NCBI RefSeq assembly: GCF_006345805.1
Contig: NC_043016.1
Coordinates: 31,310,001-31,374,000, forward strand
Direction of reading: 5' to 3'
DNA length: 64,000 nucleotides
From: Octopus sinensis
Taxonomy: Eukaryota
Numbering within the stretch: the stretch's first letter is position 1; each line of letters starts with the position of its first letter. The translations under genes were made by a program, and so were the position numbers. Positions 4,392 to 60,471 of the stretch are shown piece after piece. The notes below the pieces were generated by a model. It made no database searches, was not told where the DNA came from, and saw only the letters and a program-made list of their open reading frames with translations.

Positions 4392-60471
<56,080 letters not shown>

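Follow-up and report, generated by a model that had tools for sequence, protein, structure and literature searches.

Does the histidine codon that occupies the motif-2 arginine position of the HisRS-like domain in an octopus GCN2 gene mark a site at which RNA editing could switch tRNA sensing on, or is it a fixed change in a protein whose regulatory part has been remodelled? We addressed this question in a 64,000-nucleotide stretch of octopus DNA (the window, by which we mean that whole stretch), whose + strand carries coding exons 1-21 of GCN2/EIF2AK4 (4392-60471). These 21 coding exons match residues 1-812 of CAI9734436.1 with 100% identity (P0003), an O. vulgaris protein of 1201 aa annotated as 'eIF-2-alpha kinase GCN2-like', and the splice sites and phases of all exons examined are mutually consistent. 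The part of GCN2 encoded in the window comprises the RWD domain, a short charged linker, the kinase domain with its acidic insert and the N-terminal half of the HisRS-like domain; the remainder of the gene lies outside the window.

Pfam searches identified the N-terminal, GCN1-binding RWD domain expected of GCN2/EIF2AK4 (E=9.7e-21, residues 13-123), one kinase domain only, matched in two stretches around the acidic insert (Pkinase, E=9.8e-51), and a HisRS-like domain (tRNA-synt_His, E=6.5e-10, residues 648-946). The best PDB matches to the octopus kinase region were GCN2 kinase domains. With its large insert and 86 of 92 conserved columns retained (conserved here meaning at least 85% in a reference set of 77 full-length GCN2 representatives), this domain is predicted to be a catalytically competent eIF2-alpha kinase. 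The octopus protein aligned to human GCN2 with E=7e-170, matching human segments 22-205, 585-664 and 758-1459, and the alignment was unbroken up to residue 1046. Octopus residues 1105-1201 weakly matched human GCN2 1550-1649, as a putative C-terminal dimerisation and ribosome-binding region, and the Pfam profile HGTP_anticodon2 had no match in the C-terminal part of the octopus protein with E of 0.01 or below. Like canonical GCN2 from yeast and human (PDB 9f58 and 8t7t), the octopus protein has RWD, a kinase with acidic insert, a HisRS-like domain and a putative C-terminal region, and it keeps the catalytic motifs, including GT..Y.SPE. It is shorter (1201 aa versus ~1650 aa) and differs in having no pseudokinase, a motif-2 His, an Asn at the position of its aromatic partner, GGNYA in place of a hallmark HisB motif, and faster divergence.

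The codon in question lies in coding exon 19 (57450-57598, + strand, 149 nt), which encodes residues 703-751 and the first two bases of codon 752. Its borders (ag/GTT at 57450 and AAAG/gtaagg at 57598) are splice sites, and its phases fit the neighbouring exons at 48010-48207 and 58719-58785. Positions 57510-57530 read, in frame, gac cga gtc ttc CAT gta aag, or D R V F H V K, with Phe726 encoded by TTC at 57519-57521 and His727 by CAT at 57522-57524. HMMER comparison with PDB chains placed 'drvfHv' opposite 'ERVFRP' of human GCN2 (8t7t_A, E=2.5e-30), 'HVYRP' of yeast Gcn2 (9f58_A) and 'KVYRR' of human HisRS. These alignments put His727 in the motif-2 Arg column (yeast R1120) and make Phe726 the equivalent of yeast Y1119, so that of the aromatic-Arg dipeptide formed by Y1119 and R1120 in yeast the octopus protein retains the aromatic residue and has replaced the Arg. 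A preliminary description of this DNA had identified the in-frame CAT in exon 19 and its correspondence to yeast R1120 and the mammalian Arg, and both points are borne out. Its statement that a single A-to-G-like change would convert CAT to CGT (Arg) follows from the genetic code, and its account of gcn2-m2 agrees with the literature, in which substitution of Y1119 and R1120 impairs both tRNA binding and Gcn2 activation (PMC11363354).

The same DRVFHVK is present in O. sinensis XP_036367432.1, a 99.8% identical protein from a separate assembly. Because two Octopus species share the His in independent assemblies, it is genomic, fixed in at least two species and no assembly error. In O. bimaculoides both models end after exon 17, before the motif-2 codon. 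The RefSeq GCN2 model of that species (P0154 / XP_052829452.1) is 686 aa long and closes, after exon 17, in a terminal peptide of unrelated sequence; its lack of the HisRS-like half could mean that the model is wrong, that the assembly has a gap or that a short isoform exists.

We asked how often this column departs from Arg. An exhaustive HMMER search of 1.84 billion cluster representatives returned 1127 matches, and we used the best 150, nearly all of which are GCN2. Among these best 150 of 1127, the motif-2 column held R in 120, K in 12, H in 5, Q in 3, V in 3 and T in 2, with single cases of I, S, N, G and A; Arg is thus absent in 30 of the 150 GCN2 cluster representatives (20%). The column equivalent to Y1119 held Y in 88 and F in 56 of them. 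In authentic HisRS, a class II aminoacyl-tRNA synthetase, motif 2 is a homologous beta-hairpin, and the octopus His falls at the first Arg of human VYRR. The GCN2 domain is non-enzymatic, and even canonical GCN2 has preserved motif 2 only in part (PMC11363354), so the strict invariance of the synthetase does not apply. Other bearers of His include the parasitoid wasp Fopius arisanus and the nematode Romanomermis culicivorax. Arg is retained in the bivalves Sinanodonta woodiana and Mya arenaria and in the gastropods Lymnaea stagnalis (P0007) and Plakobranchus ocellatus. The preliminary description had pointed out that His in canonical mollusc GCN2s would deprive the octopus codon of significance; the non-cephalopod molluscs keep Arg. 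We also observed that L. stagnalis has at least three GCN2-like proteins (P0007, P0026 and P0028), with Arg, Thr and Lys at the motif-2 position, which suggests that the sensor domain has been duplicated and has diverged in this gastropod.

The EIF2AK4 protein of the cuttlefish Acanthosepion pharaonis (CAE1280004.1, P0004) reads DRIFIGK and has Ile at this column. Our comparison of cephalopods comprises Octopus and this single decapodiform model. The cuttlefish model is partly chimeric at its C terminus, where the last ~150 residues look non-GCN2 and transposon-like, and its kinase domain is incomplete, so its annotation needs care. No second, canonical cephalopod GCN2 was found among the top-ranked representative clusters looked up, a non-exhaustive set in which P0003 and P0004 were the only cephalopod proteins.

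The position that faces the motif-2 Arg has changed as well. In a fungal Gcn2 structure, R1120 forms a cation-pi pair with F1090, whose yeast equivalent is Y1092, and this Arg/aromatic interaction has been suggested to restrain tRNA binding or activation (PMC11363354). Yeast Y1092C activates Gcn2 constitutively and overrides Y1119L/R1120L (m2), and motif 2 is required for activation by tRNA, by ribosomes and by the P-stalk (PMC11363354). The partner column, which is that of yeast Y1092 and C. thermophilum F1090, is occupied by F in human GCN2 (LPFDLR) and by Y in yeast Gcn2 (QYDL). The Octopus residue is Asn699 (LPNNLR), encoded by an AAT codon at 48196-48198 (+ strand) in coding exon 18 (48010-48207, + strand), the exon in which the HisRS-like domain starts with its motif 1 region; the cuttlefish also has Asn (LANNLK). 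Across the 150 representatives, the partner was F, Y or W in 95, His in 29 and another residue in 26. Arg was lost in 16 of the 26 proteins without an aromatic or His partner versus 14 of the 124 with one (Fisher odds ratio 12.6, p=2e-7, not corrected for phylogeny), and the aromatic partner is also missing in four of the five His-bearing lineages. The simplest history would be that the Arg/aromatic pair was lost before the Octopus-cuttlefish split, after which the Arg site drifted, to His in the Octopus lineage and to Ile in that of the cuttlefish.

The preliminary description had also reported that the octopus gene is missing its pseudokinase, and alignment to human GCN2, Pfam and species comparison all agree with it. 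The interval between RWD and kinase (18601-26796, + strand) runs from exon 4 (18601-18774) to the first kinase exon (26669-26796), and the three short exons between them (20727-20792, 23982-24067 and 26043-26068) encode the charged linker. Human GCN2 residues 206-584 are opposed by just 44 octopus residues. RWD and kinase are separated by 116 aa in each of the three Octopus species (O. vulgaris, O. sinensis and O. bimaculoides) and by 39 aa in the cuttlefish; the gap measures 435-485 aa in the seven outgroup proteins in which it could be measured, those of both bivalves, the nemertean, sea urchin, cnidarian, hemichordate and fish. A salmonid pseudokinase query matched the proteins of both bivalves, both gastropods, the nemertean, sea urchin, cnidarian, hemichordate and fish with E of ~1e-18 or lower, and found no match in the octopus RWD-to-kinase stretch. 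By these comparisons the pseudokinase is absent from the GCN2 proteins of three Octopus species and the cuttlefish. We considered pseudokinase exons hidden in this 8-kb interval and rejected them: the three short exons are charged linker, and the other open reading frames between 18.8 and 26.6 kb gave no Pfam match. Published work treats the pseudokinase as an essential domain in yeast and as one of functional importance in human cells (PMC4014428, PMC12867742). Among the literature matches listed for the GCN2 pseudokinase domain, none mentioned Octopus.

The changes extend through the rest of the regulatory region. Against the same reference set of 77 proteins, Octopus is changed at 6 of 28 conserved columns in the post-kinase linker and HisRS-like region (22 retained) and at only 6 of 92 in the kinase domain. 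The six are P583R in the post-kinase linker preceding the HisRS-like domain; D700N, R719C (LKRY to LKCY) and F743V (AFD to SVD, within ECAFD to ECSVD) in the HisRS-like domain; and R935N and D937A, which turn the HisB motif GGRYD, a conserved element of both HisRS and GCN2, into GGNYA (P0003 residues 933-937, beyond the 3' end of the window). The cuttlefish has GGRFD at this motif. None of these six substitutions is restorable to the consensus by A-to-I editing. The remainder of motif 2 is retained in Octopus (PFARY, F726, P735, E740 and D744). Octopus and cuttlefish are 58% identical in the kinase domain and 40% in the HisRS-like domain; for a bivalve and a nemertean the values are 72% and 52%. 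By these identities coleoid GCN2 is fast evolving. The ratio of HisRS-like to kinase identity is 0.57-0.61 for Octopus versus 0.69-0.78 for non-cephalopod pairs. Seen against this background, His at the motif-2 Arg column appears to exceed chance expectation only weakly, because 6 of 28 conserved columns of the HisRS-like region are substituted in the lineage and the Arg column itself is only ~80% conserved.

The reading that we favour, at a probability of about 0.7, is that His727 is a fixed, lineage-specific substitution within a fast-evolving, remodelled regulatory module of coleoid GCN2 and that no editing switch is involved. The comparisons show that GCN2 of Octopus and cuttlefish has lost the entire pseudokinase domain and both members of the motif-2 cation-pi pair, the aromatic residue becoming Asn and the Arg becoming His in Octopus and Ile in the cuttlefish, and that further HisRS hallmark residues are altered in Octopus. 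Given the conservation of its RWD domain and catalytic kinase, the protein is most likely an active eIF2-alpha kinase, presumably recruited via GCN1 and the ribosome. The HisRS-like domain is kept under constraint, with the binding of a ligand (tRNA or P-stalk) probably coupled to kinase activation unlike in yeast and mammals. As to the functional consequence of His727 and of the remodelling, we infer that octopus GCN2 may have weakened tRNA sensing, a permanently 'unlatched' sensor or an otherwise compensated one. The preliminary description had offered, besides editing, the alternative that the protein no longer senses uncharged tRNA. An altered tRNA-sensing module alongside pseudokinase loss does fit better than editing; a complete loss of tRNA sensing can only be inferred.

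Octopus is altered in two of the same columns as gcn2-m2 (Y1119L/R1120L) and the GCN2c allele Y1092C, with His in place of R1120 and Asn in place of Y1092. Since the yeast Y1092 change activates Gcn2 and overrides m2, the octopus combination of changes does not have to mean lost function. The mechanism of GCN2 activation is itself debated, with HisRS-like tRNA binding, the ribosomal P-stalk and a pseudokinase dimer all under discussion (PMC11363354, PMC12867742, PMC6421407). We tentatively raise the possibility that the integrated stress response of coleoids relies on a streamlined, 'unlatched' GCN2 that is activated via GCN1, the ribosome or the P-stalk and not by the canonical release of autoinhibition by tRNA. 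A GCN2 with constrained RWD and kinase domains but without the pseudokinase and the motif-2 pair offers a ready comparative test of which elements are dispensable. The loss of the pseudokinase together with the paired loss of Arg and aromatic residue is more interesting than the His codon, which on its own is a minor detail.

One alternative is that the replacement is conservative, with His727 doing the job of the Arg, canonical sensing of uncharged tRNA and a substitution that is functionally neutral. His can still hydrogen-bond or stack, and function may be less altered than we have argued. K (12) and H (5) are tolerated here by other GCN2 clusters, those of the wasp and the nematode among them, and the remaining motif 2 is kept in a domain that Pfam still recognises. 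Moreover, the yeast m2 phenotype is that of a laboratory double Leu replacement and not of an R-to-H change (PMC11363354), whereas Octopus carries naturally occurring single substitutions and still has an aromatic residue, Phe, at the Y1119 position. Nevertheless, the Ile of the cuttlefish is not a conservative replacement, the cation-pi partner is gone, the R and D of HisB GGRYD are gone in Octopus, and a pseudokinase that is essential in yeast (PMC4014428, PMC12867742) is missing. We consider this alternative unlikely.

A second alternative holds that the HisRS-like domain of coleoid GCN2 is a functionless, decaying relic and that the His arose by neutral drift. This would account for the low ratio of HisRS-like to kinase identity in Octopus, for the loss of several hallmark residues and for the lack of an HGTP_anticodon2 match at E up to 0.01. 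It does not sit well with a reading frame that is intact over ~400 residues in both Octopus and cuttlefish, with the 22 of 28 strongly conserved columns that are kept, with the unbroken alignment to human GCN2 as far as residue 1046 or with the 40% identity that Octopus and cuttlefish still share in the domain despite their deep split. Such decay is very unlikely.

The proposal that prompted this analysis was that deamination of A57523 by ADAR, in certain tissues or under certain conditions, makes CAU read as CGU, restores Arg and turns tRNA sensing on. If true, this switch would be striking, and several features are compatible with it. A single A-to-G step separates the codon from Arg, and the His is common to two Octopus species. 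Coleoid recoding is extensive, and editing can serve as a surrogate for G (PMC7703385); like the G-mimicking recoding sites of coleoids (for example, His-to-Arg), the octopus codon is editable (CAU to CIU) in an organism that edits heavily. The preliminary description had itself cautioned that C-A-U is not the context that ADAR prefers. With regard to the -1 position, C is neither favoured nor excluded by ADAR. At +1, G or T is linked to higher editing levels in Octopus (PMC7703385), so the U that follows A57523 is not unfavourable.

We then examined whether A57523 lies in double-stranded RNA, where an ADAR site would be expected. A57523 is predicted to be unpaired in the minimum free energy structure (P(paired)=0.27), which places it outside predicted dsRNA, and the 301 nt around it fold no better than shuffled sequences (z=-0.56). 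Nor does any of the 25 longest inverted repeats within ~2 kb touch exon 19 and provide an editing-complementary arm. A hairpin is predicted within exon 19 (57491-57592, + strand), with a ~19-bp stem that pairs 57491-57509 with 57572-57592 and is built from the LKCYNI and VDIVTPSK codons; A57523 would lie in its loosely paired distal part, ~13 nt from the 19-bp stem. This hairpin is moderately significant (z=-2.34; 3 of 200 shuffles fold equally well) and counts in favour of editing, but one hairpin of z=-2.34 is not remarkable among 21 exons. If ADAR acts on exon 19, adenosines in the stem would be better candidates than A57523.

The comparative evidence is likewise at odds with an editing switch. 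At a recoding site, an edited A or a genomic G would be expected in related coleoids. O. sinensis has the same His, which may or may not be edited, and the Ile of the cuttlefish is neither G-encoded nor editable to Arg, which sets A57523 apart from the G-mimicking recoding sites of coleoids. A restored Arg would stand without its partner, which is Asn in both coleoids, and C719, V743, N935, A937 and N699 are not restorable by A-to-I editing. In the parts available of the supplement text of PMC8382921, PMC7703385 and PMC9068888, there is no entry for E2AK4, GCN2 or EIF2AK4. Word-based searches for spliced octopus transcripts among protein sequences gave only the genomic exon fragments P0001 and P0227, neither of which spans exon 19. 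Together, the comparison and the folding predictions disfavour rather than support meaningful editing at A57523, and we regard the switch as highly improbable. An Arg727 isoform added by editing of A57523 on top of an unlatched GCN2 is less likely than the unlatched GCN2 by itself. Finally, an assembly error or a private SNP is effectively refuted by the identical residue in the O. sinensis RefSeq protein.

Several minor features of the window were also apparent. The string CAT/GTAAAG at 57522-57530 resembles a 5' splice site; it is probably unused, because splicing there would put exon 20 out of frame. Intron 2 contains a tandem array at 14521-15036, with a 109-bp unit present in 4.7 copies at 97% identity, and + strand open reading frames whose translations closely resemble this array occur in many places, for example at ~19.0, 32.5, 46.8, 53.3, 54.4 and 63.0 kb. 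Transposable-element-like fragments lie within introns at 22750-23700 and 52122-53052, and a PHD-finger match (E=1e-5) was obtained for the open reading frame at 52122-52667. The window as a whole is AT-rich and repeat-rich, with a GC content of ~32-46% per 2-kb step (mostly 31-41%), and its most GC-rich part lies at 52-56 kb.
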